Origin: Magallana gigas
Taxonomy: Eukaryota
DNA: 64,000 bases
Reading direction: 5' to 3'
Assembly: GCF_963853765.1 (NCBI RefSeq)
Contig: NC_088857.1
Coordinates: 15,438,001-15,502,000, forward strand
Part shown: piece after piece, positions 14 to 19,900 of the stretch
Layout: the number at the start of each line of letters is the position of its first letter
Position numbering within the stretch: position 1 is the first letter of the stretch
Position numbers and translations under genes: made by a program
The notes under the pieces: generated by a model
What the model saw: the letters and a program-made list of their open reading frames with translations, nothing else
What the model was told of the DNA's origin: nothing
Database searches by the model: none

Positions 14-1312
14 AAACAGCGAGAAGACGCTTTAAGCATTGAGAAAGTCTTGAACCGAGTAAAGGTACAACTCTTTATATTTCTAAACTTTAAGGGAATA
101 AATGATATGACAGTGATATCCATGTGTCCATAACTGGCAACTTTATTTAGAAATAAAGATTTACTTTAGATTTTACTCGTCAGAGTAATATGATTACCGT
201 TAGTTATACCGGTATACATCTATGACATTTTGGCAAGGCTGCTTTTTCCGTGATAGCGTTCAGTATTATAGTGCCTAAAATCTTGTTTAGTCCAAGACAC
301 GTCTTTATCCTCGTTACTTTCACCTCAATATATGATTTAATAGACGTGATTGATTCATTTAAAATAATATTCGTCACTGAACATTTATGCTTCTAAACAC
401 AGGAATACTTTAGAGAAATCCTCAAGGATTGCAGAAAAAGCATCAGAAGCGAACTTTTAAAAGTCAGACTTCCTAACCACGTCTTGGTAAAGGTATGTTA
501 TACATCAAATGGACACATTTTATGGAATAATCATGCATGCAATCATATATTATTTCCTTTGCATTTATTCTTTAAAAAATCATTCAAACATCATTCTGTT
601 TGTTACTTTAAACAGGCCAAAAAGCTACTTGATATGTTTAAAGCAAAGAGAAAGTATCTAAAGAAAATGCGCCCCGAACAGTTTCTGGTGAGTAATGAAA
701 CTACATGTATTTTATTGTAATCTAACAAAATAACATTCATGCATACTATATGTGTAACAAATTTATCAATGCATACTTTAGTGTGAATTGTCCAAATACA
801 TGTACATGCGTGTATGAAAATAATTAGTTCCGGTTTTAACCTCTTTCTAGACTCTTCTAAACGACTACAATATAACAACAGAATATTTGAGGCAGTACAT
901 GCTGGACAAGCCGAAGCACTCTGCAAAAGAGAAAACAGACCTCTCATGGTGTGTCACAAAGCAAAAACCGGAACTGACGTCAGGGAACAGAAAATGGGAT
1001 ATCTCAATGGACAAACTACTGAAGGTGGAGATAGAGCAAGAGGAAGATGAAGAGGATGACGGTTTTGCGCCTCGTAAATTGTTCCTTTCTGGCATAGAAA
1101 GCTTCAAGCCAACCCCTGCAAAGAATGAGGTGCAGATCATGGAATGGTAAATAGCACTAAAAATATTTATACAGCAGATACATGTGTATAATTGTTATTC
1201 ATTAGTGTATATTGTACTGTGCAATAGAGTTACGTGTACTTTGTCAGCTACAGGTATGTATAATTCCATGTTTGTTTATCATTACAGCAAGACCATTCGT
1301 CTGAGACGTTGA
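14..1312 (+). CDS. 3' part of an uncharacterised spliced gene (continues upstream of the window)
   Basis: Phase-compatible GT-AG exons 14-64, 403-486, 616-687, 851-1146, 1288-1312 (TGA). Translation: KQREDALSIEKVLNRVKEYFREILKDCRKSIRSELLKVRLPNHVLAKKLLDMFKAKRKYLKKMRPEQFLTLLNDYNITTEYLRQYMLDKPK...EEDEEDDGF...QIMECKTIRLRR*. An unspliced stop (TAA 1148-1150) is also possible. No family recognised. Confidence 0.7.
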
Positions 1313-3845: not shown

Positions 3846-6800
3846 TTATGATTCCTCGTCTTCGGCTATTTCTTGTAATGCTTCTTCATCCATCCTTTTT
3901 TCTAGTTTTATAGCGACCTTGACCTTTGCCCAATCTCTCCGGACGGAACTCCCACTCCCTGGGTACATCATGCTACTGATGACACTTCCGGGGTGCCCTC
4001 GTCCTAGAAAAAAGTTTATTCACAACAGAAAATGTAAGTTTTACTCACTAGTAAATAATATAACTGCTTAAAAAAAATTATTATTTTATAATATTATTTT
4101 ATTAATTTATTAAAGACTAATTATATATAAGGCCTGTATATTTCCACAAGCCTCATATCTATCAATATGAGAATCATGATACTAACCAGCATGTCTTAAC
4201 CCTCCAACATGAGACTCCGGTTCCTCGTAATGCTCTTGCAGATACTCAACATTCAAATGCAGCATTTTTGATTCTAAAGGTAAACAACACAACGTGTTAG
4301 TGCCAATCCTAAATTTCTAAAATCCTTATTAATTAAAAAAAAATTCATAAACGATGTTATTTAAAACATTCATTACTAATGCCTATTAAATTCTACGTAG
4401 ATAAGTTCTTAAAAGTCCTCCACCCATCTGGAAACAGTTCTGTATGGAAGCCCAAACGTCTAAACAACTTAAATCTAGCACGTGTTTGACATGAAAATAA
4501 AAGAAAAAATTTCGATTTTGGGGAAAAATCGACTTTTACAATTTTTACCACTATTTATAAAAACCAAAGTCCCTGTAGTATTCGAGCTCTGGACCTGCAG
4601 ATCAAAGTTTCGACCATTGCGCTAGAGCGATATACACCAACTACTGGCAACGTTAACAGTTTCTTAATGGGTTAAAATCGCCATTTTAGTGACGTACTTC
4701 CATAAAAAGTAGAAGCCACAGGGTGTCGAGTATCTTTCATTGAAAAATATTCTCAATCAAGTATATCATATGATGTTGAAAACAACAATATAATTAAAAA
4801 TCCTCGAAATATTTACTTTGAGCTTCAATTTCCCAGCTGTAATGAAGATTGTCTCCAATGTTTTTATCTTTCTTCATGAGTTCAAATTTGGTTTTTCTAA
4901 GTGGTGCTTCTGAACCCTCCAGCCCCTTTCGTTGGTTAAGCTTGGACCAATGTCGTTGCTTATGCTACAGCAGAGAAATATATAGTTTCAATTATTTACG
5001 TCAATGATAAGCATTTTCAAAAGATTGAATAATACTTGCATCTGTTGAATAGGCTAAATGTTTAGTTGTTTAATTTCTATTAGCAGCTGGTTGAATCAGC
5101 GGAGAGTTGTATCATAATGTATATTATATGCAACCGGAATGCAATCGTTACATAACCACGTACTCTGGCCGCAAGCTCGTCACTCTTTTCTTGTTTTTCC
5201 AAATCCATTTCCAACTCTTCTTCTGTGCGAACGGCGAACTCTGCCAGTTTTTGTTCGACGTGTGTTTTAACTATATTATATTTAATATGATAAAGTTATA
5301 GATTTGTTAGATACACAATCACTAAGGTAAATTCTTTTTATTATTTTTTCAAATATGAAGCATACCGATATCTTAACACCGATATGATAAATAAAAATAG
5401 CGTTTCCCGGTGTTATAGTGTTACATGCTTATCTTGCTTTTTTCAGATAATTATCAATAACTCTTCTAGAATATTTACCAATAGGATCGTCAATTGCTCT
5501 CAAAGCACATAGGTTGATAACAAGCAACCAACAAGGTGTATCCCCGGCCTCTATCCCATCTTTCACCAGACTTAAACACGTGACGCTTTGATATCGTAAT
5601 ATGGTGTCGTCACCATTTGGGTTAATTTTCATCTGGATAGCCATTTGACACTTAAATTCCTCCATGTCAAATATCTGTGAGATAATTAATATTAACAATT
5701 GTATTCATGTGTATATTCATATTAGAATTTGTAATGCAGTTTAGAATTAACAGAAAAATATGTATCAAAAACATATCCAATACCGTTGACAGACCAATCT
5801 CACATTTATATCATTTTTCCCTGTTCAAAATTCGTTCTGATACTTTTGTGCTGATTTAACGAAAGCTTGTAACATAATCTATCTTCCACTTAAACACGTC
5901 TTGGAAAAAGCCCAAAATGCAGCGAAGTTCCAAGAAGCGAAAATGAAGCTGATACAAAATGTTCCTAGCAAAGAGTACACCATTGTACTTAAAGGTACGT
6001 GAATAACTAGGTTGAACATATTAAAATAAGCGGGCTAATACGCCTTGGCAATTAACCACACACACATAAAAACAGATGAAAATTAAAGATATGAAAACAC
6101 TCATTTAAAACTGTTTAAAAAATCTATGTTGCATGTACATTTAAGGTAAAAATAGCATCAAAACAAAATAAACTTAATGTAGATACGGTGTATTAGTGTA
6201 TTGTAAAGTTTACCTTCACGGGCACATGGTGAGGCAGTTTCCCCTCGTGATTGATGACATCCAGAGAGAAGCAGTGTTCTGAGGGGTCGTCATGGCCTCT
6301 CACGATCACGGGGTTCTTGCCTAGCCGTGTCGCCGTGATGCTCCCGTCCATGTCTTTCCGGAGTTTTACTCCCTACCGGGAAATGAATCGATCGCTTAGA
6401 CATTCTTCAATACATATGTAATTAGTTGCAAGGGATGATTAGATTGTATCATGAATAAATGACGATCAAATATAAGTTCTTAGTAATTGTTTCAACGTAA
6501 TTTCAATAAAACATTTCTTAATTAAAGAAAAAACATTTCTTTTCTCTGTTTACTCGAGTGAAGAATGTAGGTGAGCAGTTTTTTGTTTTTTACTACGGTG
6601 ACTGTATTTACCTTAAAAATTCTTCACAACCGTTACAAACTCTACAAGGAATCATTCGTGTTACAGTTATAAACGCACCTGGCCAACATAAGGCAATATA
6701 CTGGCTGTTTCGTCGTCCCGATATTCATTACGGAAGTAGGACAGGCTTATTCTTTGAAGGTAAACAAAAACCATATTTAGTAATTGATACTAATAAATGT

Positions 6801-9800
6801 AACATGATTAAAAATCCATAAAAAATGTAATTTTGGTGTTTTTTTTTTTAAATGGCCATTCCGAATAGGTATTGTTCATATAAGTGAAATTTCTCTATTT
6901 CTATTGTTGTTATTGAATATTTTTTGAAAGGAAACGTTGCTACATGACCCGCTATCTTTGTTAAATAGCAATATGAAATGATAATAATAAAACGTGCTTT
7001 ATCAAGGCGACAGTGATCATGAACAGGAACTTAATAGCAAAAGTATTTGTTTGCATTGTTTGTTTGATTTTTACTTTTTACTTTTTTTTCTAAATAAACA
7101 TTAATATTTGAAAAATAGCAATAAAAAAAACTACCCTCGAGAGTTATTAACAATAATGTTTGGAGATTAGGATCATAGAAACTAATTTTGTTATGTTCAA
7201 ACTAATAAAACGGAGAGGGTTCACGAAAGCTTCAAAGTTCTTAAAGTTAAAAAAATGTCCTTAGTTACCTTTCCCCGTCAAACTCTGAACCAACTTTTCC
7301 GTCGATGGTCACCTCTCTCTCTAGTATGTAAAACTTTTGAACAATTCTATCTCTCTCCAGGTACACTATTTTGCACCAGGCATCAGGATCAACAGATTTC
7401 CATTTTGCGTGTAAATGAGCCAGAGATTCCTGAATTAGAAAAATGGAATTATTTATTTATAAACAAATTGTAGAATGTATTATTATAATACGATATCGGA
7501 AATGGTTATCATTTTAGCATGTGTATTTTTTCTCTGCCTTAAAATTGTTGAAATTGATCTTGTCAACGGATTTGTCAATTGTGCTAAATATGGTTACATG
7601 TATATATTGTATGTGCAAATGAAACTTATATCATAAAAATAAAAAAAAATGTTTAGCATGTGTATACGGAAAAAAATAAGAGAATATACCTTGGATACTA
7701 CTGTGGTTTCACCAATTTTCGTTGAATACCAATTTTCATGGATTTCGTTTTAAGTTGATCCATGAAATTAAATGTTCATTGAAATGCAATTTCTATTAAC
7801 ATTTTGTATTGATGGGGACATTGGCCACGAATTTACATATCCTTGAAACTGTGATTTTCACTTCATCCACGCAAATTGATACCCTTGAATATTAATGAAA
7901 CCACAGTATATGTATGTATACTGTTCCTAATGATAAAATATCTCTACATTTTGTACACTAAATACATTGTACATTATAAATCTTGGATTCGACGATTACC
8001 TCTAAGTAAGTAGAATTTTCTTTACGACACCCTGTTTCCTAAATTCAAGCATTTATTAGTAAAAACTACTGTTAACAAACAAACAAAACCCCCAAAACAC
8101 TAGCAACAGACATTAGGAGGAGAAAAAAAAATAGACTGGCAAACCTGAATAATATTATACTCCATGGATTAGAATTACATGTAACACATGTCACAACTAC
8201 CGAGTCCCCAAATACTGGTGATAGAACATCAACCTAGGCGCTTTATATGCTGTGTTCGACTGTGCATAAACGTTGAAATCGATACAGGGCGACTATAGGA
8301 GGACGGACGCTTTATAACACACGAAACATATTGTTATGGGTGTGTTTATCAGTTACAAGGTCATCTTAAATTTGTGCAGGTGACTGTGTTACATGGCGAT
8401 TATTTAAATAACCACTTCCTTCTTTAATATTTTGTCATCCAACATATTAAAATCATATTATCAAACTTTTTTTTTTACCAAGTATACGAAAAAGTATTTC
8501 AAACATACAAAATTATACATTTATGCGTAAATATTTTGTGTTATTTTTCTAATTAAAAATCAATATAAGTTATTTTTTTTGCTCTAGATATGAGGAACTA
8601 TACCTGGGCAATTTGATACAATTGACGTCTTGAAGCACCATATCCAGATCTAAACGGATGGAAAGTAAAAAAAAGTTTTGAGAAAAAAAGAAACTCATTG
8701 CAATCGTCTAAATCAAATATTATTTCCTTTATTACCAAGCCATTCTGAGGCGGTGAAATGATTTTATTATCAAATTGCTATAAAAGGTGTCGTGTTATTT
8801 GTATTCTTGGTAAACTGTTCTATTTAATCCATTACGAGTTACCAGTAATTCACTGCTTTCCTTTATACCTAGAATTATAATACTCGGATTGCACGTGACC
8901 ACCGTAGTGAAAACTTTCCTCCATACTATCGTAGTCTGGAGCGTCGTATATATCGTCGTCCATACGCCTCGGTAGTCCTCTCCTGACATACTGAGATTGT
9001 CTGGTACTTCTTCTCCTCAGTTCTTGCTCTTCCAGCTGTTCAATTCAAAATGAGGATTTTAAAGTAGTAGTATGACTTGCATACTGGTGGAGTCAAAATT
9101 AACTGTAACTCAATTTTCGTATAATTATTCTGTGGGTAGCTCCTTGTCAAAAATTAACATTCACGTGCAAAATGAATAAATGAAAACATTTTTTAATTAT
9201 TGCACACAAAAGCTGATGAACTACATACTTAACAACCCGACGAGCTATTACAACATTAGCAAATCACAAAAAAGCCTCATTAAATGATCTCACGTTTTAT
9301 TCTATGAGACTTTGAAAACTCTTTGTGTCTGTAAATAAAACATGCAAAAGGAAAAAAAAATACTTTATCACTCTTACTTTTTTTCTATAATGATGTTTGT
9401 CAAGATCATTCGTTGAAACCATTATATGAAACAGCTGATCTCCTGTTTTGGCCGCAATGTTTCCAAGAGAGAACACTTGATCTTTGCAATATGTTATATA
9501 TTGCAGCGTGTCCAGAAACTTTCGACGGGCAAGATACATCTGAATTGTAGTTTGAATCAAACGAAGATCCGAGATAAACTTTTCCAAACACATGTTTAGT
9601 TGATCCACATGCCAGTATTTCAGAAACACCTGCGAGGCAAAAAATGTTTCTGGTAAGTCCATATGATTCACACTGAGAGAGAGAGAGAGAGAGAGATTTT
9701 CTTTTTAGTGTTAGGTAAAGCAGTCAGATCATACCTTTGATTTTCCAATTTGATAGTCGTACAGTTGAGCTTTCTGTAATATTCTATCGCAGTTGGCTGG

Positions 9801-12800
9801 ATTTATTTCAACGGATTCAGTAACAGGAAAGCCGACTACTTTATACCTAATTTATGATTGCATGAAAACAATATTTTATTTCAAATGTTTATCATTTTAT
9901 CAAAAAATGCTTGATAAATGGTAACAACAGTAGGCCTTCGAATTATTAACACAAAATAACTAGAAATTAACATACATGTTTTTAACTTCAGAGTCAAGAG
10001 TAAACCGATGAATATCAAACTATTAGAATCTCACAATACCTAATGTTTTTAGCAATTCATGAGAAACATCCACAAGCGAGACGTAGACAATACCTGTTAT
10101 TGAAATCTTGCATGTGCATACGAGTAGGATATCCCAATTTTCTTATTCTGGTCGTTTCGAATACACCAGTATTGAGAAGCTGATTATGAACAAGTTTTAC
10201 GTCAAAAAATCCGTATTGTTTTTCTGCATTTGCCCGAATACATCTACATAAAACAAAACATTAACTGAGTTAAATCGAATTGAAGAAAGAATTTAAAATA
10301 AAATAATGCTATACAAAGCTAGCCTTACCGAACAAACTGGGGTTCTGATGCTTTGAGATTCTCCATAAGAGACGCAAGTGAATTCTAAAGAACAAACGAA
10401 ACAATAAACTTAAATACTAGGTAACTTGACTTAAAATATCAAGTAATTATTGCTAATGAAGAATAATCGGATAATACAATTAAATTCAGAGTTTCTGAAG
10501 TAAATTTATCAAGCATATGAAATAAAATCATAGTTCCATGCAAATCATTTGAATCAATTTTTAAGATTTATTTTACATTCAAGTCATATTGCTAAAATCG
10601 ACGAAACGCTTATTTTTTTCAAATATAAACATGTTTTGCTACGTTGTCTCTTAATCAGCGACGATAAATTGAGTAACAGTTTCCAAAACTATTCATTGTT
10701 CAGTAGTTCACGTAAACCTACATTAAAACATAACCTTGATTACAAACCCTAGATCTTTTTTATAAAGGACGAAGTGTTTAACATATTCGACCTACCCTGA
10801 AATGAACACTTGTTGAAGTACTTGACGAATTGGGTATAGCAGGGAGTGGGCGATCTATATTTGTTCTAAATATAAAAAAAAAATCCGTTGATATAAGAAT
10901 AAACATGACGATTGATCAAAATAATTTCACTGTTCCTGTAAAAGGTAGAGCTGAAGGACAATTTCGCTATCACTAATCTTCACCTTTGTTTTATTTTCTT
11001 TCCTGCTCGTTTTGAGAGGGTTTCCCCTGGACCTAACGCTGGCATGTTTGGTTGGTTCCACTCAGGTACCGTCCATTGGCTGTTCCGTTTGTCAATGTTT
11101 CTTACAATGTTCAAGCAAAATAATATGAAAATAATATTTAGACAATCCGAAGAATTTGTAAAATGTAATGTCGCTTTCTTTAAAAAAAAACCCAATCAGA
11201 TGTAATAGACTGTATTACCTGGTGTTACTGTCAGGTCGGTCATCAAATAGCTCATTGATTAACCAGTTGTGACTATTTTGCATAAGGCTTATGAAATTGG
11301 TACCCAACGTCTCTCTGTTTTTCTCAATAAAACCAATGGCGTTGTATGTGACCTGTTGGATGCGATATAATTAACATGCATTGCTAAATAACAATCAAAG
11401 GCAACCCCCCCCCCCCCCCCCAAAAAAAAACACAAAAAAACCCACAACAACCCCCCCCCCCCCCCCCCTAGACAAAACACTTAAAAACCCAACTAACCTG
11501 ACCTGCATAATGTTCTATTGTAAAAACCGGATCTCTTGATTTGCACCTTTTATATACATCATTCTTCCCAAATTCTTTATTCATGTGATCTACAAACGTG
11601 CCATCTGTTGACATTTGCAATCTGCATTCATCTTCCAAAATGGCAAACAATCCGATAGGTCTCTATTCAAGATATAACAATACGTAAGTCTGAAGATACT
11701 TCAAAAATTAAATTCATGATAATATAGTAAAATGATCACAGATAGAGTATTATAAGCTTCAAACTCACATCAAAGAAGAGACCAAGAATTTCGTTATTGT
11801 TGGTAAATTTGATCTTTGGCTGTTTGATACCCTCTGCTTGATATTCTTGCAGTTCCCATGAAAATATGTAAGTATTGAAAAAGCTCTGCAATTGTTCATT
11901 AGCACTGTTAATGCACAACTGTTCAAAACTGTTCACTTGAAACCTCTCAAATCCAGCCATGTCCAATAAGCTTATAATTCCAGCATCAGTATACCTATAC
12001 ATGTAGATTACAAAGAAAGTTAAATACAGGTTTTGATTAAAAAAGAAGTGTATCGTATAATGAAACTGTGAATATTTATTTAAATGATCCTCAATGTTTG
12101 CCTTGATAACTATATGTATAAGTTATATTTTCTGTTACTTATTTAATGTAATTTACATCAATTTATGAAATTTTTGTGTCAATGGAAAATCGCCAATGTT
12201 ACTATAAATAGCACAAATTTAAAAGTAAACAAAAAACCAAACAGCGTCAAAGTAAAAGCTTCCGCTATACCAAATAGTTACACAAAGAGCCACGTTTTGT
12301 CAAATGTGTTGGCATTTTGTTTCTTCTTTTTTTTAGTTTTCTTATTAATAATGTGTTTTAAAAACAAGACTATGCATTTTGGACACATACAATGCGCATA
12401 AATTTCCATGACCTACTGTGCTGCGCGTTGAAGAAATCGGGATTGAATACCTAACGCTTGTTGCAAAATTCAAGGCAGCAACTGTTGAACTTTTTTTCTA
12501 CTAGACAGACATATTTTTGTTTATAGCCGCTTTGAAAATTTGGTCGCTCTCTGACGCTTTGCCGACATTAAATGCATGAGAGAGAGAGAGAGAGAGATTT
12601 ATTTTCAGTCTTTACTACACAATATGCATAAAGACACACCAAACGAGCCCGGCTTTCAGTACTTCAGTACTTTGATTTATTCAGACCCACCAAACTGTGT
12701 TGAACAATTAACCAAAAGAAGATGAATTCAAATAAATTACGACGCGTAAACCTAGCACCACATGGAGACCCATAAAGAGAGAAACAGAAAAAAAAAGATT

Positions 12801-15800
12801 ACAAAAACTGACCGTTCTTGGTCGTCCTGGACATGAATGACTTGGTTGATTCTTTTCACTATCCAAGTAAACAGTCGGCTATATAGGGCTTTACACAAGG
12901 CATCCCTGCCATCACACGCCTCGTGCATTGACTTCAGTCTCACGATCCTCTCGCCTTCACAGAATAATAAAATAAAACTTAAATTTCAAGACACCTTACC
13001 AATAGCTGATCATCATGCCATGCACATTTCAAAACGATTGTAAGATTATTTTAAAAAGAAGAATAACTGAATGTTGTTATAAAGGTTTTAATCTATGCTA
13101 ACCTCTGACAAAGCTTGATGAAGCTATCAGGACTGTTACCAGGTCGTCAGCTTGCAGGGAGAGTAGTCGGCTTCCTAAGCAAATATATTATGTATTAGAA
13201 TATATTCTTAAAAAGTTAACAAACGATTACATGTAAGTAGAAAAAGAATGAAGTAAAAAGAAATAGTTACCGTAATCCACCTCGTCTTCGTTCACTATGA
13301 TGAGCTGCTGAAGTTCGGGGTCTGGAGCAAAGTCGATGTTACTGAGATGCAAGATGCCAGCCATGATGGCAAAAATTATATTAACGATCTGAAAAGTAGC
13401 AAACACATTGAATACCGTTGTAATTATTGACGAATTCTTTGAAGTATTTTCATGAATTGTGTCTCACCTGAGAAGGAAACCCTGTGTCATTCATGGCTTC
13501 TTTCAATTCTTCAAATCCGCTCCTGTTTGCCTCATAATCCATTTGAGAAGTAAAAACTGGTGCCCCGTGTCTAGGGTCCGTGATTCTACGTTGGTAGAAT
13601 AGATATGTACAATTTCTATTGCTACATGTATACTTCTAGTATAGGGTCAAAATTCAATTTAAAAAAAATGAGTTTTAGTGGGCGTTTAGCTTAGTTTGTA
13701 TCAGTCAAAAATTCCGAATATTTCAATTTCAAGTTTGAATATTTTCCTTTACCTTTATATATAGTTCTTCTCTTTAGAAGATTAATAGATTATCAAAATG
13801 GAAAGGGACACGACCACAACAAATAATATTACCTGTAGTGTTCCGGACGACTCAGATAGAAATGTTCGATTTCGTATTGAGACAATCCAGCAAACATATA
13901 GTAGAATATATGGAAGGACCTTTCACCATTTCCACAGTGTACGACTCGACTTTTCTCTAACATGTGTTCCGTCACCTTTGCTGAATAGACATGTAAATGA
14001 AAACTGTGATAATTGCTTGATTTTGTGTAAAAATACTCTGAAACATGGTTTTGAGCATTAAACCCTTTACCTCCAATAATCTTTCCTTGCTTGTTGAACA
14101 TGACTTCAATGAGCTTCCCAAATCTACTGGAATTGTCGTTCATTGTTGTCTTAGCGTTTCCAAAAGCCTCTAGTATAGGGTTTATCTGTAATGAAAGTCA
14201 CAATTTTTTATCCTCTTGCCCCTTTAATAAAACGTACATTGTAACTTTTGTTTTTGTAACTTTTGTTACTATATGTATAAATACAAATAATACTGATATT
14301 TATTTGTAAATGACCCAACCTCGACTATTTGTTCGGCAAGTTTAGTTGGCTCCTGTGACTTTGACATACGGGCTAGCTGGGCTATTGTCATTTTCGTGCT
14401 CTCCGTTTTACCTACCAACGATATTGGGAAATAAGGAAGCAATGCACGAAGATTGATAAAACATCACATTTTTGTTGCAAAGAACATGTAGTATAAAAAT
14501 ACTTATAATGAAATTATAAAGATGAATTGAAATTATTCATATCTCTTATTCTAATAGATTACAATGTTACATGTACATGTATCTACATCAATGATATTTT
14601 AATAGAATGATAAAAATAATATTTCTACAAACGTATTATGCACTCAACAGATGTATCACATGCACATATCACTATGGCATATTTAAAGATTATAATGAAA
14701 TGCAAGAAACTATTCTAACATGAGACGTTCGCTACCTGCTCCTGATTCACCGCTGACTAGAATAGCTTGGTTGACTCTGCCCCATATCAAATTCCTGTAG
14801 GCTTTACTTGCAATTGCGTATATGTGTGGAGACAGATCTTTAAGATTCTTGGCTTCAGAATAAACCAACCCCACCTGAAAATAATTATCTTATTTCATTA
14901 CTGTATATAAAAATATATTCGAGGATTCTTCAGTAATTATATTTGCTTAAAGTAGCTAGGTTTTGACAAGGAGAACAAATCTGTCACAGACAGTAAATTT
15001 TAGTAATTAACAAGTAAATTTGTTTTGTCCATACCTCCCCTCCATAAATTGGCAGCATCATGTTTGGGTTGACGGCCACTAGTATGTCTCCAAGATAAGT
15101 CTAAAATAAACAAATCATTTGAATGTAAATATTGTTACCAAAATATGTATTATTCTCTTTTGATTTATGTACTATTAGATGAATGGAGAGTGTATGATTT
15201 AATGGGTAAACTTTTTGCAGTTGTTTTGGTTTTATTACGATGTTCTTAAAACATACAGTAGATGGTAATATCATTTTATAATGTATTTTAAGATCATTAA
15301 ATCAGGATCATTGATTGTCTCAATTGTATCAGATATATGATTTGTGAAGCCTATTACATATACTTTAAATTTCATAGCGCTGACAATGAAAATTTACATT
15401 ATTAAAGACGAGAATACTGATTTGTTTTTAAAGAATAAACGCAAAACACCCGTCACTATTCAAATCCATGTAGTTTATGTGACTGCAACAAATCATGGGC
15501 GAACGATCTGTTTTGTATTTACTTTAATTGAAGGTAGAAAACATAGCAAAACATCTCCTTTTTTTTTAGAATTCCACTCAATGATTTGTATGCAATTATG
15601 TACTAGAGTATTTTAAACTTTGCTTGCGAGGTTAATTGTTTGCATTATTCAAAGTGTGTTAACTAGAAACAGTCATCTTGCTTATAATGCTTAATATTTT
15701 GTTAGCGAAATTCTGCAATAAATTTTCTGAAATATCTGCATAACTAAACAAAGTCCCGAGGGTTGCGTGAATCAAGTGAGTGTGTAGTATTAGTTTGCAT

Positions 15801-16974
15801 CTGATTCTATAACTACAAATAATTCTAGAATTACGATCATTCTTATCTTATCTGGCGTTAAGGGGTCACAAATTAAACAAATTTTAGTTTCACCAAAATA
15901 TATAATAAAAAGACAGACGTTTGTTTAAATAGTTTATTTTTTTATAGTTTTCTCCAAAAATATATTTGTTCCCGTTATACGTCTAAGTTCACAGTCAAGA
16001 AAACTTAAAATGACACTACTTTTTCATTTAGAAGAAATTTTATTAAGAAACTTTATTAAATATATAAATTAAAAAAGAGATTTTTAATGATTGTTCTTGT
16101 ATTATAGTTATCTATCTTGCAGCTGCACTGTATATCTGATGGTCAGAGTGTAAACAAGTTGAATGTATATCCAACAGATGGCCAGTATTGAAATTTTCTT
16201 GTAACTATCGGCGTATTTAGATCAGTGGTTGAAAAAAGATTTTCATTCACTTTTATTTCTCGAATTTCATATGTCACGATGATTCCCATTTTTGGATGTT
16301 TTGTGTCTAGCTTTGATTGATATACCGGAAGGTTATGTGACTCTAAAGAAGTCAAAATATGAAAAGATTACAAAAAGACGGATTGCAAATAGAGTGACAA
16401 AAGGTCTAAAAGACAATATATATATTCAGATACCATTTGTGATTAGGTAAAAGAGTAGCAACAAAATATTTCAAATGGTAATATTTGATTATTTTCTTTC
16501 ACAAGAAGATAATTGTTGGCTACCTCTAAGTGTAGACATAAACCGAATCGCCATGTATTGCAATAAAGCTGTTTTAAGATAGTGCTTACTTTTTGACTGA
16601 CAGACAACAAGGTGTAAACCCGATAACACTTTTTGCTTATATTGGGGTAAGATATCAACATTATTAAACCTAAGTCTTGTAGGGTTGAACCATCTTCCCA
16701 AACCAAGGGTTTCTGATCCCCATCTCTGCCCACAAACGCCGAATTGAAAACCCTTGACTTTGGAAGAAGGATTCAACAAATGTCATCAATCCTATAGGTA
16801 AAGTTTACAGTTCATACACATTCTGAAAGATGCAATTTATTTAGTAATTAATAGATATCTTACATATATGGTATTTCTTTCATATCGTCGTTTTAACTCA
16901 TGAAGAAGAGAATCCTCAGTCAGGTCTCCAATAACCGCCATATCGTCGCCATAACTCTTTTCTGGTACTGCCAT
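3846..16974 (-). CDS. Unconventional myosin (class III-like motor, no kinase domain) with one IQ motif and a C-terminal Smad MH2-like domain; 29 coding exons, ~1227 aa
   Basis: Exons (5'->3'): 16974-16864, 15100-15035, 14874-14736, 14411-14320, 14185-14071, 13980-13833, 13585-13468, 13388-13271, 13174-13103, 12954-12813, 11994-11769, 11662-11498, 11352-11219, 11079-10984, 10865-10796, 10384-10329, 10243-10094, 9846-9735, 9629-9378, 9035-8869, 8649-8604, 7429-7269, 6751-6679, 6372-6214, 5674-5479, 5270-5164, 4964-4817, 4273-4187, 4003-3846. All phases match (3684 nt). Motor motifs: [10 protein letters not shown]-loop [17 protein letters not shown], switch-1 NDNSSRFGK, switch-2 [40 protein letters not shown]-like motif [15 protein letters not shown]. 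An in-frame TAA just upstream of the ATG fixes the start. Confidence 0.93.
5479..7429 (-). other. Smad MH2 (DWB)-like domain encoded by myosin exons 22-25
   Basis: [28 protein letters not shown] / [29 protein letters not shown] / VKIFDMEEF / [10 protein letters not shown]...[17 protein letters not shown] is colinear with Smad MH2 motifs as I recall them (WCSIAYYE..., FCLGLLSN...HIGRGVRL, KIFN.QEF, IRMSFVKGWG...TPCWIELHL..PL..LD). Confidence 0.85.
7701..7906. mobile_element. MITE (~206 bp) with a TA target-site duplication, Tc1/mariner-like, in a myosin intron
   Basis: TA|CTGTGGTTTCA ... TGAAACCACAG|TA terminal inverted repeats. Confidence 0.75.
9675..9696. repeat. (GA)n microsatellite
   Basis: Direct reading; a similar tract lies at ~12578-12597. 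Confidence 0.8.
11404..11468. repeat. Two poly-C tracts (poly-G on the transcribed strand) separated by A-rich sequence
   Basis: C-runs at about 11405-11421 and 11451-11468, roughly 30-90 nt downstream of the myosin exon 12 donor. Confidence 0.8.
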
Positions 16975-19900
16975 TTTGATTTCTGCTTAGAAACCACTTG
17001 ATGATATTATTTTTTATCCTGTGAAAAAAACTTCATGGTTGCAATGGAATGTTTTATATCTTGAAATTACTTATCTCTAGATATATATTTTTCTAAACAT
17101 GGTATCTTTAATCAATAAATCCGGAACGCTTTGCTTTTTATGTCTAGATTCAGTTGCTTTGATTTGATAGTGAACAACCAAAAATACACAAAAGGTCAAG
17201 TTTCCTATTATTTTATTCATTCAAACATTAAATTGTGATATAAAAACACGTTGAATATAATTTTGAAATGATCTTAAAGCCGTAGGGAAAATAATACTAG
17301 TACAGAAAATATTGTTTTGAATGAGGAAGTATTGAAGCAATTTAAGACCTTAATCTCTGTAACCTATTCAACCCGTAATGGACCATAAAACTACACAGTA
17401 AACTGCCGTGAGAATGAATTGCAATTATGCGAGAGATCCACTGTGAACAGCAAGTAATTATCCTACACGTGTGTATTTCTACATCGTAAAGACTCCTCTA
17501 TAGGTTGTAATGTTGCCTTTCAGACCGACCCTGCCTTATTTTTTTTTTTTGCACGCTTTGCAAACTAAACACAATTCTAAAGAAAGACGGAAAATAATAT
17601 GATGATAGAAACGATTAAGCTACATTAGTTTCAAAATATCTTTTTTTAAATACAATTGAATTAAGAACTGTATGTATTAACAAATTTCTTTACGGTCTAA
17701 CAATTACGGTGTAAAGGACACTTGTTATCTTACCAAGTGTGTCTGTTTAAGTTTTTCAAGGTTACTAGAGCTAGTGTATCTTTTTCTTTTTATTACAGAT
17801 GGATGCAATGTTGATAGGTCTGACATTTTATTATACAAAACAGGTGGAATGCTACACATCTCATGAGCTATCAGAGCAAAACTCACATTCTTTGTTCATA
17901 TTTGGATTTAATTAATGTTTTTTTTTATAAGAAATCTGCAATTGATTTGATGTAATCATGTAAACAACGAGAAAATTTTTAAATTTTCTACACAGGAATG
18001 TGAGGGTCTATACATATTGTATCAGATGATTAAGTAGAAATGGACAGTTATGATTTCAATGATATCAGACATTCGAAGACAAACTGGGTCTTATTTCTAA
18101 CTTTCAACAAACCATAACAGAATTCTTTATCAGTTTATGTATCACTAAGATGACTTCTATTAGAAATGACATAGCTAGCTAATGGATACTTTAGGTACAC
18201 ATTCATCAAATTTATTTTGGCAATTTCTTAAAAAAAATATTTTTTTTTTCAAACTCGTGTACGTCAAATTTACGGTAGTTTGTTATGAAGAGTTTTAGAA
18301 TAATAGCATTCTTTTGCAATGATTCATTTAGGTCCCAATAATCATCAATTATATCAAATTGACAATAATTTTAATAAGCAGTTTTATACCTCTAGATTTA
18401 GATTAAAAAACAAAGTCCATTCTTTGAAGTAGACATTGTGTTTAAGATTAATGTGTAAATCCAGCAGTAAATCATTTATTTCTATTTCAAATATGTTATA
18501 CGTTTTTTTTTCTTGAATTCATGTCATGCAATACATATGAATTATCGATATAAACTAATGATTTTCAAAGATCCCAAGAACTTTCCTAAATCGAGTAACT
18601 GTTAACGCAGACAAGGTCTCGTTACAAAAAAGTAATGCACCTTATTCAAGTATTTATCGATTTTTGCCATTTTATACCACGGTCTTCTTTTAGTCCGCAA
18701 CATTACTCAAAGAGAAAACGGTCTTATGAAGTTTACACTTTTTACATATATGCAAGGTTCAAGATATGGTCTATATAAAAGACGAATATTTCAAACTGAT
18801 TTAAATTACATGAATCCGAGTTGATATCGAAGTTGTCGAGTAAGCAGGTGTTGTAAAATGTTTTGCTCTTGGAAGTTATCTAGAAGAAAAGAGCTAATTC
18901 ATACCTTTAAAAAACGTCAATTGCAACATCTTCAACACTTGTTCTTAGAAGTCACCATATTCTATTTTAGGTTTTACCTACTTCGAGATCGTTAATATAA
19001 TACATTTCCTCGTCAGGCTAACAGACACAACACAACAGTTCAGCAACATCAAATGTCATCATATATAAACATCTTGTTAACTAATTATTTCTTTATCGAT
19101 AGAAACTGAATATACAAATACACTGCAGCGATTGCTTTTGCGAGAATTTAGATTCTTAGAGTGATCGTTAATAGTGCTTGTCCTATTTCTAAATCAAGCA
19201 AGCACAACACTTTAAACTCATAATCAATCTCCGTTTGAATGATCAATGACACAAGAGCTATTGTTATCAATACCTACCTTCAAGATTATACAACTTCCAT
19301 GACATCATGAACAACAACATCCAAATATAGCGACCACATCGCCATCCATTTTTTTACCCACACACAAAATGAAAATCGCCGCGGCACAGTGTAAATTTTT
19401 AGGTAAAATCACGTTTAAAGGGTAGAATTACAGCTGCTTTGTATTGTCGGGGCACCCAGTAAGGGGTTCAGATCACTTGAAAGAGTGCAGTATTTCAATA
19501 ATCTTATCAGCTGATTGCTGGGACGCCTGTCAATTGCAAGGAGACTCGATATGGATAACCACCGTATGCTCTTCTTAATATAAACTGTATTGAATATTGT
19601 TATCAGCAAATTCGTACAGGAGTAGGACTACCTACTTTTTACAAACACGTGTACACGTTCTATTTTGTGTTTATTTACAAACTAGCATTACGGTTTGTGC
19701 CTTTGATTTTTTCTTTTATCACTACTATTAATAGAGTGTGTTTAACTTCATTATTCAAGATATTAGACTCATTAAGTTTTGGTTTATTCATGCTGATGTA
19801 CATACTTAGTTTCCCCCTTTGTATTTTGGGTTGTCATGTATTGATTTCTGGACGCAGATATGCATGGCAGACCATCAATAAATCTTTACAAGAAGGAAGT

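Follow-up and report, generated by a model that had tools for sequence, protein, structure and literature searches.

The window, a 64,000-nucleotide stretch of the Magallana gigas genome, carries on its minus strand one gene of 29 exons, all introns of which are GT-AG and which encodes a single open reading frame of 1234 amino acids (Table 1). The model ATG is at 16974, and the stop codon occupies 3846-3848. The encoded protein is 100% identical to RefSeq XP_011451184.3 (P0165), named "myosin-IIIa isoform X2" of M. gigas, and the protein-level tests were run on this record, the sequence of which is the same as that of the 29-exon model. Isoform X1 (P0164) differs solely by 17 extra N-terminal residues, the first 14 of which map to an upstream exon. 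Intron 5 measures 90 nt and is free of stops, so that it may be retained in some transcripts. An Rfam scan of the window returned zero matches.

Table 1. Features of the MH2-tailed myosin gene, in window coordinates
Feature	Position	Strand	Basis
Coding span, 29 exons, 1234 aa	3846..16974	-	GT-AG introns, RefSeq identity, 29 cDNA blocks, RNA joints for exons 18-29
Exons 1-8	16974-16864; 15100-15035; 14874-14736; 14411-14320; 14185-14071; 13980-13833; 13585-13468; 13388-13271	-
Exons 9-16	13174-13103; 12954-12813; 11994-11769; 11662-11498; 11352-11219; 11100-10984; 10865-10796; 10384-10329	-
Exons 17-23	10243-10094; 9846-9735; 9629-9378; 9035-8869; 8649-8604; 7429-7269; 6751-6679	-
Exons 24-29	6372-6214; 5674-5479; 5270-5164; 4964-4817; 4273-4187; 4003-3846	-
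Putative alternative upstream coding exon, RefSeq isoform X1	19279..19320 (low end approximate)	-	Mapping of the isoform X1 protein
Myosin motor domain, aa 10-721, exons 1-19	9618..16947	-	Pfam PF00063 and motifs
P-loop GESGAGKT, aa 101-108, interrupted by intron 3	14404-14751	-
Switch I, aa 152-160	14114-14140	-
Switch II DMAGFE, aa 385-390	11946-11963	-
Neck, aa 717-816	8991..9737	-	AF2 model, 28-orthologue alignment
IQ-like motif, aa 741-755	9516-9560	-
Low-complexity linker, aa 818-861, predicted disordered	8637..8987	-	pLDDT <50, gappy alignment columns 100-240
Expansion-type N-alpha-MH2 domain	5513..8621	-	Pfam, phmmer, AF2, Foldseek
N-alpha helix, aa 867-880, exons 21-22		-
MH2 core, aa 889-1057, exons 22-25		-	Pfam PF03166
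TPCW strand	5510-5542	-
C-terminal extension, aa 1069-1234	3849..5479	-	Alignment, tblastn, AF2 model
RxWSKxNxR	4926-4958	-
YSW	4830-4847	-
RxxWAKxK	3915-3941	-

Stranded poly(A) RNA reads and RNA contigs displayed every joint between the neck and the final exon (exons 18-29) on the minus strand, namely 9735/9629, 9378/9035, 8869/8649, 8604/7429, 7269/6751, 6679/6372, 6214/5674, 5479/5270, 5164/4964, 4817/4273, and 4187/4003. The least-supported of these, 8604/7429, was covered by 2 raw reads and one contig at a depth of 88. Additionally, a 4115-nt Logan transcript contig from a closely related oyster (L001), with 94% amino acid identity to the window protein, gave 29 contiguous alignment blocks on the window, which correspond to the 29 exons. 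Together with the RefSeq identity, these data bear out the proposal, made in an earlier sequence-only reading, of one gene with 29 exons, and the joints that this reading had singled out for confirmation (9035-8869 to 8649-8604 to 7429-7269) were all found in RNA reads. A protein ending directly after the MH2 domain, where the open segment 5704-5435 closes in a stop, was rejected, as the reads use the donor at 5479 and skip this stop.

An artefactual merger of a myosin gene with a neighboring MH2-only gene, introduced either in the reading or in gene prediction, might be suspected from the long introns lying between the neck and the MH2 exons (1174 nt, 8604 to 7429), and from the annotation of Solemya velum, which is split into a motor-only (P0057) and an MH2-only (P0007) protein. 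Against this, spliced reads span the junctions, many runs contain full-length transcript contigs (79 members in the P0044 cluster, with contigs of 4.1-7 kb), the same fusion occurs in >40 species, and orthologues are colinear end to end with the oyster protein. We consider the chance of such a merger negligible, and the identity of the gene and its one-gene architecture practically certain.

Motor, neck, and Expansion-type tail

Pfam placed a Myosin_head domain (PF00063) at residues 10-721 with an E-value of 1e-193, and the P-loop and both switches lie within the open reading frame, confirming the intact motor that had been recognized from the letters alone. No kinase was detected by Pfam in the window protein, in which the motor begins at residue 10 and to which isoform X1 adds only 17 residues, and no Chitin_synth_2 domain was detected either. 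The neck is predicted to be one continuous helix of ~100 residues (AF2 model, helix 3-102, pLDDT ~90). As for the one IQ motif proposed previously, a single IQ-like motif is indeed present, with an invariant Q and conserved LARR in an alignment of 28 orthologues, but residues 715-800 gave no match to Pfam IQ (PF00612) even at E<=5; a fragment of a relative (P0009) did match, with an E-value of 0.001. The linker that follows the neck differs in length among the aligned orthologues.

The tail contains a Pfam MH2 domain (PF03166) at residues 889-1057 (E 6e-20; 72.6 bits versus a cut-off of 25), although this match is decisive with the full protein only, since the MH2 matches of single exons are sub-threshold (E 0.0014 and 0.19). 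For the same reason, a scan of the genome with the PF03166 profile misses the window locus, as its exons score too low; a protein-based scan found this to be the only N-alpha-MH2 locus in the oyster genome. No MH1 domain was detected by Pfam in the window protein, and SSxS is absent from the C-terminus, which reads AEDEES and lies 177 residues past the MH2 match. The sequence-only reading had described the tail in these terms, as an MH2 domain lacking both MH1 and SSxS, and had staked the description on an MH2 profile match, which was found.

Its label of "Smad MH2-like", in contrast, did not hold, while its hint at Drosophila Expansion/Rebuf proved productive at the level of both sequence and fold. 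The tail scored 83 bits against Drosophila Expansion and 35 bits against the best Smad. In a phmmer search of the PDB, the window tail matched 4r9p with an E-value of 1.8e-22 and Smad1 with 8.9e-8, and a profile built from 40 tails matched 4r9p with 8.8e-51 and Smad4 with 5e-24. The AF2 model of the tail (pLDDT 95) matched 4r9p in Foldseek with a TM-score of 0.88 and an rmsd of 2.1 Å, compared to TM-scores of ~0.73 for Smads. The Foldseek alignment to 4r9p covers 199 columns, and the sequence alignment begins at Expansion residue 40, inside the N-alpha helix; the model of P0044 872-1076 likewise has a helix at its residues 2-11, with pLDDT >90. In the L3 region, Expansion aligns to the tail without gaps, whereas between SFVK and TPCW Smad4 has 6 residues more than the tail profile, so that the oyster tail has the shortened loop of Expansion/Rebuf (11 residues) and not the 17-residue L3 of Smads. 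The added helix of an N-alpha-MH2 domain lies over the surface at which Smads trimerize, and its L3 loop, which binds phosphoserine in Smads, is shortened (PMC4388265). The oyster tail is an N-alpha-MH2 domain of the Expansion/Rebuf type and not of the Smad type.

A phylogeny of MH2 domains, of the kind the sequence-only reading had suggested, was consistent with this assignment. Myosin tails and Expansion-like proteins were split from oyster Smad1/5, Smad4, and Smad6/7, which had been cut from the oyster genome as outgroups, with 100/100 support, and the Expansion-like proteins (P0025 and P0184, of arthropod type, recognized by a CM2-like motif and near-identity to the Expansion alignment) nested with lophotrochozoan myosin tails (93/83). 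Expansion-type MH2 has been stated in print to be confined to protostomes; myosins of echinoderms, hemichordates, and sponges also carry this domain type.

Beyond the MH2 domain, the C-terminal extension harbors three tryptophan motifs, invariant in orthologues as far apart as oysters and echinoderms (W396/W434/W493 of the 28-orthologue alignment), which are flanked by helices in the AF2 model. By tblastn, the extension is colinear with a Sinanodonta protein (P0027).

The MH2-myosin family and its motors

The oyster gene is an orthologue of an old animal family of MH2-tailed unconventional myosins. The family comprises class-80 in echinoderms and hemichordates and unclassified orphans in molluscs, annelids, and brachiopods, with sponge members as well, and some 40 animals have an annotated orthologue. 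More than 40 proteins combining PF00063 and PF03166 were found, from bivalves, a chiton, Patella, Lingula, annelids, echinoderms, hemichordates, and sponges. As the sequence-only reading had surmised, the architecture appears in large myosin surveys: Sebe-Pedros et al. 2014 (PMC3942036) reported MH2-tailed "myosin III-like" myosins in the sponge Oscarella and the choanoflagellate Salpingoeca, and Kollmar and Muhlhausen 2017 (PMC5583752) reported class-80 MH2 myosins in Ambulacraria together with mollusc and annelid "orphans". Both the architecture of motor plus MH2 and the gene are thus already catalogued in myosin surveys and RefSeq, and what is added here is the Expansion-type identity of the tail.

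Exon-by-exon ranking of paralogous motors did not show the nearest class, and a motor tree, which the sequence-only reading had also proposed, was used instead; the chitin-synthase motor sequences in it were roughly assembled from HSPs. The three oyster chitin-synthase motors fell in a clade with bilaterian MH2-myosins (93/100), as sister to the lophotrochozoan MH2-myosins (88/90), while ambulacrarian MH2-myosin motors formed their own clade (99/93), and classes III, XVI, and the SH2-myosins were separate from the MH2-myosin clade. The grouping of chitin-synthase with MH2-myosin motors agrees with that of Kollmar and Muhlhausen 2017 (PMC5583752). The position of the chitin-synthase motors between the lophotrochozoan and the ambulacrarian class-80 clades accounts for why that survey left the lophotrochozoan MH2-myosins as orphans. 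However, AU tests failed to reject either a bilaterian MH2-type motor clade excluding the chitin-synthase motors (p 0.13) or a single clade of all myosin tails without Expansion-like proteins (p 0.10 and 0.20), and the nesting of both motor and tail is therefore suggestive only. With this in mind, the motor sequences suggest that the chitin-synthase-fused motors, whose loci lie elsewhere in the genome, are the closest paralogues of the oyster motor within the oyster genome.

Proposed function and rival readings

We found no functional paper on the oyster gene or any orthologue, no mention of XP_011451184 in any paper, and no paper tying Expansion/Rebuf to myosins. Two features point indirectly to chitin: the Expansion-type tail and the sister relationship of the motor to those fused to chitin synthase. 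In flies, the N-alpha-MH2 domain is specifically required for chitin translocation, and Kkv and Rebuf were not found to interact physically.

Our preferred reading is that the motor head would walk along, or anchor to, cortical actin, and that the tail would serve as a protein-recruiting module that is neither a Smad-like trimerizer nor a phospho-Smad binder. Judged from fly Expansion/Rebuf, the likeliest task of the tail would be to organize a complex at the apical cortex that lets chitin synthases deposit chitin, with the shell and the larval shell field as candidate sites. We give this explanation as a whole, comprising identity, anatomy, a non-Smad adaptor tail, and chitin by analogy, a probability of roughly 0.6. 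Among its parts, the action of the tail as a non-Smad adaptor is likely, while a role in chitin deposition, drawn from the analogy with flies, is plausible but tentative.

The strongest competitor, which we regard as a serious possibility though somewhat short of even odds, is that the protein is a general cortical or cargo myosin, the MH2 domain of which recruits non-chitin partners, for instance in membrane trafficking or receptor tyrosine kinase (RTK)-linked apical remodelling, and that the chitin link of Expansion/Rebuf is a later ecdysozoan specialization. The family is older than chitin-based shells and has been retained in echinoderms, hemichordates, and sponges; its occurrence in the first two points to a broader role in the ancestor, and no report of a chitin synthase in echinoderms or hemichordates was found in the literature searched. 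The conserved tryptophan motifs are found in myosins only, and Expansion has been tied to RTK-dependent terminal-branch morphology, at least as Iordanou 2014 is cited in PMC4388265. Weighing against this reading are the placement of the chitin-synthase motors as sister and the need for N-alpha-MH2 in fly chitin translocation, which are independent pointers.

The MH2 fold is common to the tail and Smads (Foldseek probability 1.0 to Smad2/3/4, in addition to the Pfam match), and the sequence-only reading had envisaged a motor carrying Smads or receptors, such that the tail would bind phosphorylated R-Smads, Smad4, or receptors and haul them along actin. Given an Expansion-type tail with the extra helix and short L3 loop, transport of Smads is unlikely: the tail resembles Smads less than half as much as it resembles Expansion, it has no SSxS, and Expansion neither trimerizes nor takes part in TGF-beta signaling, with TGF-beta read-outs unaffected (PMC4388265). 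We judge this proposal very improbable. A slightly better but still poor prospect is that the tail chiefly oligomerizes the heavy chain, giving a processive motor with two or three heads. In its favor, MH2-type domains of Smads and IRFs oligomerize; as no obvious long coiled coil is seen in the protein, processivity would need another dimerizer; and the long predicted neck helix might pair. However, the N-alpha-MH2 domain of Expansion elutes as a monomer in SEC (PMC4388265), and the N-alpha helix, also predicted in the oyster tail, clashes with the Smad trimer geometry.

Returning to the preferred reading, a more far-reaching and decidedly speculative version is that Expansion/Rebuf are the motor-less remnant of an ancient MH2-myosin tail, that a lophotrochozoan duplicate of the motor was fused to chitin synthase, and that the oyster gene may be the intact ancestral form, the molluscan counterpart of Expansion/Rebuf coupling cortical actin to chitin translocation. 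The Expansion-type tail provides a handle on how the N-alpha-MH2 domain enables chitin export by chitin synthase, as well as on why lophotrochozoan chitin synthases bear a myosin head. Should the oyster myosin act together with chitin synthases, a single gene would make the connection of actin to chitin secretion during shell formation testable, and the protostome-only statement for Expansion-type MH2 would need revision.

Comparison with known systems

Like the oyster protein, class-80 and orphan MH2-myosins consist of a motor, a short neck, and a C-terminal MH2 domain. The starfish and acorn-worm members are colinear with it end to end, with 36-38% identity and the same three tryptophan motifs, but the oyster motor lies in the lophotrochozoan branch of the motor tree, apparently beside the ambulacrarian class-80 clade and not within it. 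Class III myosins rank among the next-closest motor classes (~40% motor identity) and have an N-terminal kinase and several IQs. Membership in this class was rejected, as the class III clade (100/99) excludes the oyster motor and no kinase was found; since the protein is without a kinase domain, the RefSeq name "myosin-IIIa" is a misnomer. Work by Weiss in 2006 is reportedly cited for class-36 chitin synthases with an N-terminal myosin head. These class-36 myosins are lophotrochozoan (Zakrzewski 2014, PMC3942024), and their tail is a multi-pass chitin synthase, in place of which the window protein has its MH2 tail.

Smads share with the oyster tail the MH2 beta-sandwich and the W-C and TPCW strands, but have no N-alpha helix and an L3 loop that is 6 residues longer. 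Drosophila Expansion/Rebuf (PDB 4R9P) have the same type of domain, with ~30% identity, the N-alpha helix, and the short L3 loop. In these motor-less proteins, however, the MH2 domain stands at the N-terminus, ahead of a disordered region that carries CM2 (YYCG..ARVPN in P0184 and P0025). The oyster protein is without CM2, having neither YYCG nor ARVPN, just as Expansion-like proteins are without the WSK, YSW, and WAK motifs, and the MH2 domain is the only part that the oyster myosin and Expansion/Rebuf have in common.

The MH2-tailed myosin gene and its transcripts

The window is animal DNA, AT-rich and free of gaps, and minus-strand open segments between 16974 and 3846 hold unmistakable pieces of a myosin motor, followed downstream by two others that correspond, in the expected order, to the beginning and end of Pfam MH2. 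Splice joints in the 3' half of the gene model were taken from RNA reads, the rest followed colinear tblastn matches to three full-length relatives retrieved via the tail, and leftover junctions were settled by GT-AG, phase, and homology. The model has 29 exons, GT-AG throughout, and a single 1234-aa ORF from the ATG at 16974 to the stop at 3846-3848, exactly the exon count and coordinates of an earlier, sequence-only reading. Its protein is 100% identical to XP_011451184.3 (P0165, "myosin-IIIa isoform X2 [Magallana gigas]"), indicating that this gene was already annotated with the same CDS.

The gene is expressed. Eleven CT..AC joints, all of minus-strand origin, link exon 18 through exon 29 in stranded poly(A) RNA reads (two runs) and RNA contigs (two sets). 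Among them were 9035/9378, 8649/8869, and 7428/8603, so the junctions that the sequence-only reading had singled out for confirmation (9035-8869>8649-8604>7429-7269) are present in reads. Exon 5674-5479 ends at a splice donor ahead of an in-frame stop at 5435, and the ORF therefore continues for four more exons. L001, a Logan transcript contig of 4115 nt that comes from a close oyster relative and encodes a 94%-identical protein (P0044), aligned as 29 blocks in succession, each bounded by the ends of an exon, and RefSeq orthologues from Crassostrea virginica (80%), Ostrea edulis (76%), and Saccostrea (75%) aligned end to end with the model. Together with the RefSeq identity, the RNA joints, L001 blocks, and end-to-end orthologues exclude, for practical purposes, the alternative that motor and MH2 belong to two genes.

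Several other features were observed (see table). The predicted upstream exon of isoform X1 (P0164) would extend the gene ~2.3 kb past the start in the sequence-only reading, and retention of intron 5 would lengthen the motor by 30 residues, placed after switch I and before the next strand. The element in intron 21 resembles a MITE. Its coverage by reads and contigs exceeded that of the intron on either side 10^3- to 10^4-fold, on both strands, and reads broke exactly at 7699 and 7908-7911, indicating a very abundant, transcribed repeat family. Neither the 656-aa nor the 1480-aa open frame had a Pfam match; both probably belong, as exons, to a neighbouring gene for a large protein of low complexity. 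The assembly also differs from all or most RNA runs at many single bases (e.g., 4878, 4922, 4931, 5546, 7411, and 9446-9524, with G>A at 5546 in every run), which look like ordinary oyster polymorphism rather than editing.

Features in the window, and chitin-synthase myosin genes elsewhere in the oyster genome (loci L006-L011, genome G000)
Feature	Position	Strand	Details
Upstream coding exon, isoform X1	19279-19320	-	alternative; adds 17 N-terminal residues
Intron 5	13981-14070		90 nt, in frame, without stop; tblastn reads straight across
Element in intron 21	7699-7908		~210 bp; 22-nt terminal inverted repeats, 86% complementary
Open frame, 202 aa	21405-22010	-	leucine-rich repeats (LRR_6, E 2e-18)
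Open frame, 656 aa	24921-26888	-	S/K/P-rich; 174-nt tandem repeats
Open frame, 1480 aa	29182-33621	-	E/S/K/D-rich
Chitin-synthase myosin gene	C6:46.56 Mb (46.557-46.577)
Chitin-synthase myosin gene	C5:7.54 Mb (7.534-7.565)		recent tandem pair with the next
Chitin-synthase myosin gene	C5:7.59 Mb (7.582-7.624)		recent tandem pair with the preceding

Domains of the protein and type of its tail

The gene encodes a motor that looks competent, followed by a long helical neck, an adaptor domain of the Drosophila Expansion (Exp) type, and a conserved C-terminal extension. Pfam matches on P0165 are Myosin_head (aa 10-721, E 1e-193) and MH2 (aa 889-1057, 72.6 bits, E 6e-20; cut-off 25 bits). None was obtained for IQ, MH1, SH2, kinase, or chitin synthase, and the ATP-site motifs read from the ORF (17 letters not shown, plus DMAGFE) are canonical. 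The intact motor, the MH2 tail, and the lack of MH1 proposed from the sequence were thus borne out; the proposed IQ motif is no more than IQ-like. In an AlphaFold model of neck and tail built with 28 orthologues, the neck is predicted to be a single continuous helix of ~100 residues (aa 717-816, pLDDT ~90). Beyond it the model has a linker predicted to be disordered (aa 818-861), then a helix leading into the MH2 domain, and last the extension. The extension carries three short Trp motifs, RxWSKxNxR, YSW, and RxxWAKxK, all invariant across lineages as far apart as oysters, echinoderms, and hemichordates.

The sequence-only reading had described the tail as Smad MH2-like, but it lies far nearer to 4R9P, the structure of the Exp N-alpha-MH2 domain (1.8e-22 for the oyster tail alone, against 8.9e-8 for the best Smad). 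Starfish (1.1e-23 against 1.4e-12) and sponge (6e-17 against 7e-10) tails behaved likewise, and a profile of 40 orthologous tails matched 4R9P at E 8.8e-51 (175 bits) and its best Smad, Smad4, at 5e-24 (88 bits). An AF2 model of the domain (P0044 plus 39 others, pLDDT 95) superposed on 4R9P with a TM of 0.88 (rmsd 2.1 A, 30% identity), compared to ~0.73 on Smads (21-26% identity). Both features defining the N-alpha-MH2 type (PMC4388265) are common to Exp and the oyster tail: the extra N-terminal helix, with the alignment beginning inside the Exp helix at residue 40, and a short L3 loop, aligned with Exp without gaps and six residues shorter than that of Smad4. This is the only N-alpha-MH2 locus found in the oyster genome; Smad MH2 loci lie elsewhere. 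These results strengthen the Expansion/Rebuf reading of the tail. Given that the N-alpha helix of Exp covers the Smad trimer interface, and that Exp is monomeric and without a TGF-beta role (PMC4388265), the Smad transport suggested earlier is disfavoured, and the oyster myosin is unlikely to carry Smads or to trimerise in Smad fashion.

Motor and MH2 phylogenies

Three oyster genes pair Chitin_synth_2 exons with myosin exons 12-35 kb upstream, and the heads they encode share an FHIFY-x-MFAGLSQ stretch with the MH2-myosin. In an ML motor tree, these chitin-synthase motors, assembled roughly from ungapped HSPs, formed one clade with bilaterian MH2-myosins (93/100), as sister to the lophotrochozoan ones (88/90), and classes III, XVI, and SH2-myosins formed separate well-supported groups. 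An AU test rejected neither nested nor sister placement of the chitin-synthase motors (p 0.13).

The MH2 tree, rooted on oyster Smad1/5, Smad4, and Smad6/7 cut from the genome, split Smads from all other MH2 domains at 100/100, which puts the tail outside Smads in the comparison that the sequence-only reading had called for. Stand-alone Exp-like proteins (four nematode and two arthropod-type, the latter with a CM2-like YYCG..ARVPN motif) formed one clade (98/98). It grouped with the myosin tails of Lophotrochozoa (93/83), separately from those of Ambulacraria and sponges. Such a topology would be expected if Exp and Rebuf (Reb) were ecdysozoan motor-less counterparts of the oyster myosin tail, although the alternative to this nesting was not rejected in AU tests (p 0.10 and 0.20).

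Possible role and known relatives

As the earlier reading suspected, the architecture is not new: it had been described and annotated before, under a name that misleads. C-terminal MH2 myosins were reported in Oscarella and Salpingoeca and discussed as a possible origin of Smad MH2 (Sebe-Pedros et al. 2014, PMC3942036), and Kollmar and Muhlhausen (2017, PMC5583752) defined ambulacrarian class-80 myosins by a C-terminal MH2 and placed lophotrochozoan orphans of the same architecture with or next to class-36 chitin-synthase myosins. Our database search found PF00063+PF03166 proteins in >40 species (bivalves, chiton, Patella, Lingula, annelids, echinoderms, hemichordates, and sponges), most auto-named "myosin-IIIa/b-like". 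RefSeq/UniProt names vary by species, including "unconventional myosin-X-like", "-Ic-like", and "-IXAa", and none fits, as the proteins lack kinase, PH/MyTH4-FERM, and RhoGAP domains. In Solemya velum, a motor (P0057, 1015 aa, PF00063 only) is annotated apart from an MH2 tail with three Trp motifs (P0007, 384 aa), which probably reflects splitting of the gene model and not a genuine fission.

A literature search found no functional study of an MH2-myosin and, as far as searchable literature shows, no earlier link of Exp/Reb to myosins. Based on fly data and motor kinship with chitin-synthase heads, our best single guess (probability about 0.3) is that the oyster protein helps organise apical cortical actin so that chitin can be secreted as the shell forms. 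Its tail probably recruits proteins and does not trimerise. In flies, N-alpha-MH2 is needed for chitin translocation dependent on the protein Kkv, and direct Kkv-Reb contact was not detected. The main rival reading, to which we would give somewhat less than even odds, is that the protein serves more generally as a cortical adaptor; it is favoured by the presence of the family in echinoderms and hemichordates as well.

Among known systems, class III myosins stand apart from MH2-myosins in the motor tree, and the grouping of class-36 chitin-synthase heads with MH2-myosin motors agrees with Kollmar and Muhlhausen (2017, PMC5583752). Exp and Reb have their MH2 domain in common with the myosin tail, but not its flanking motifs.
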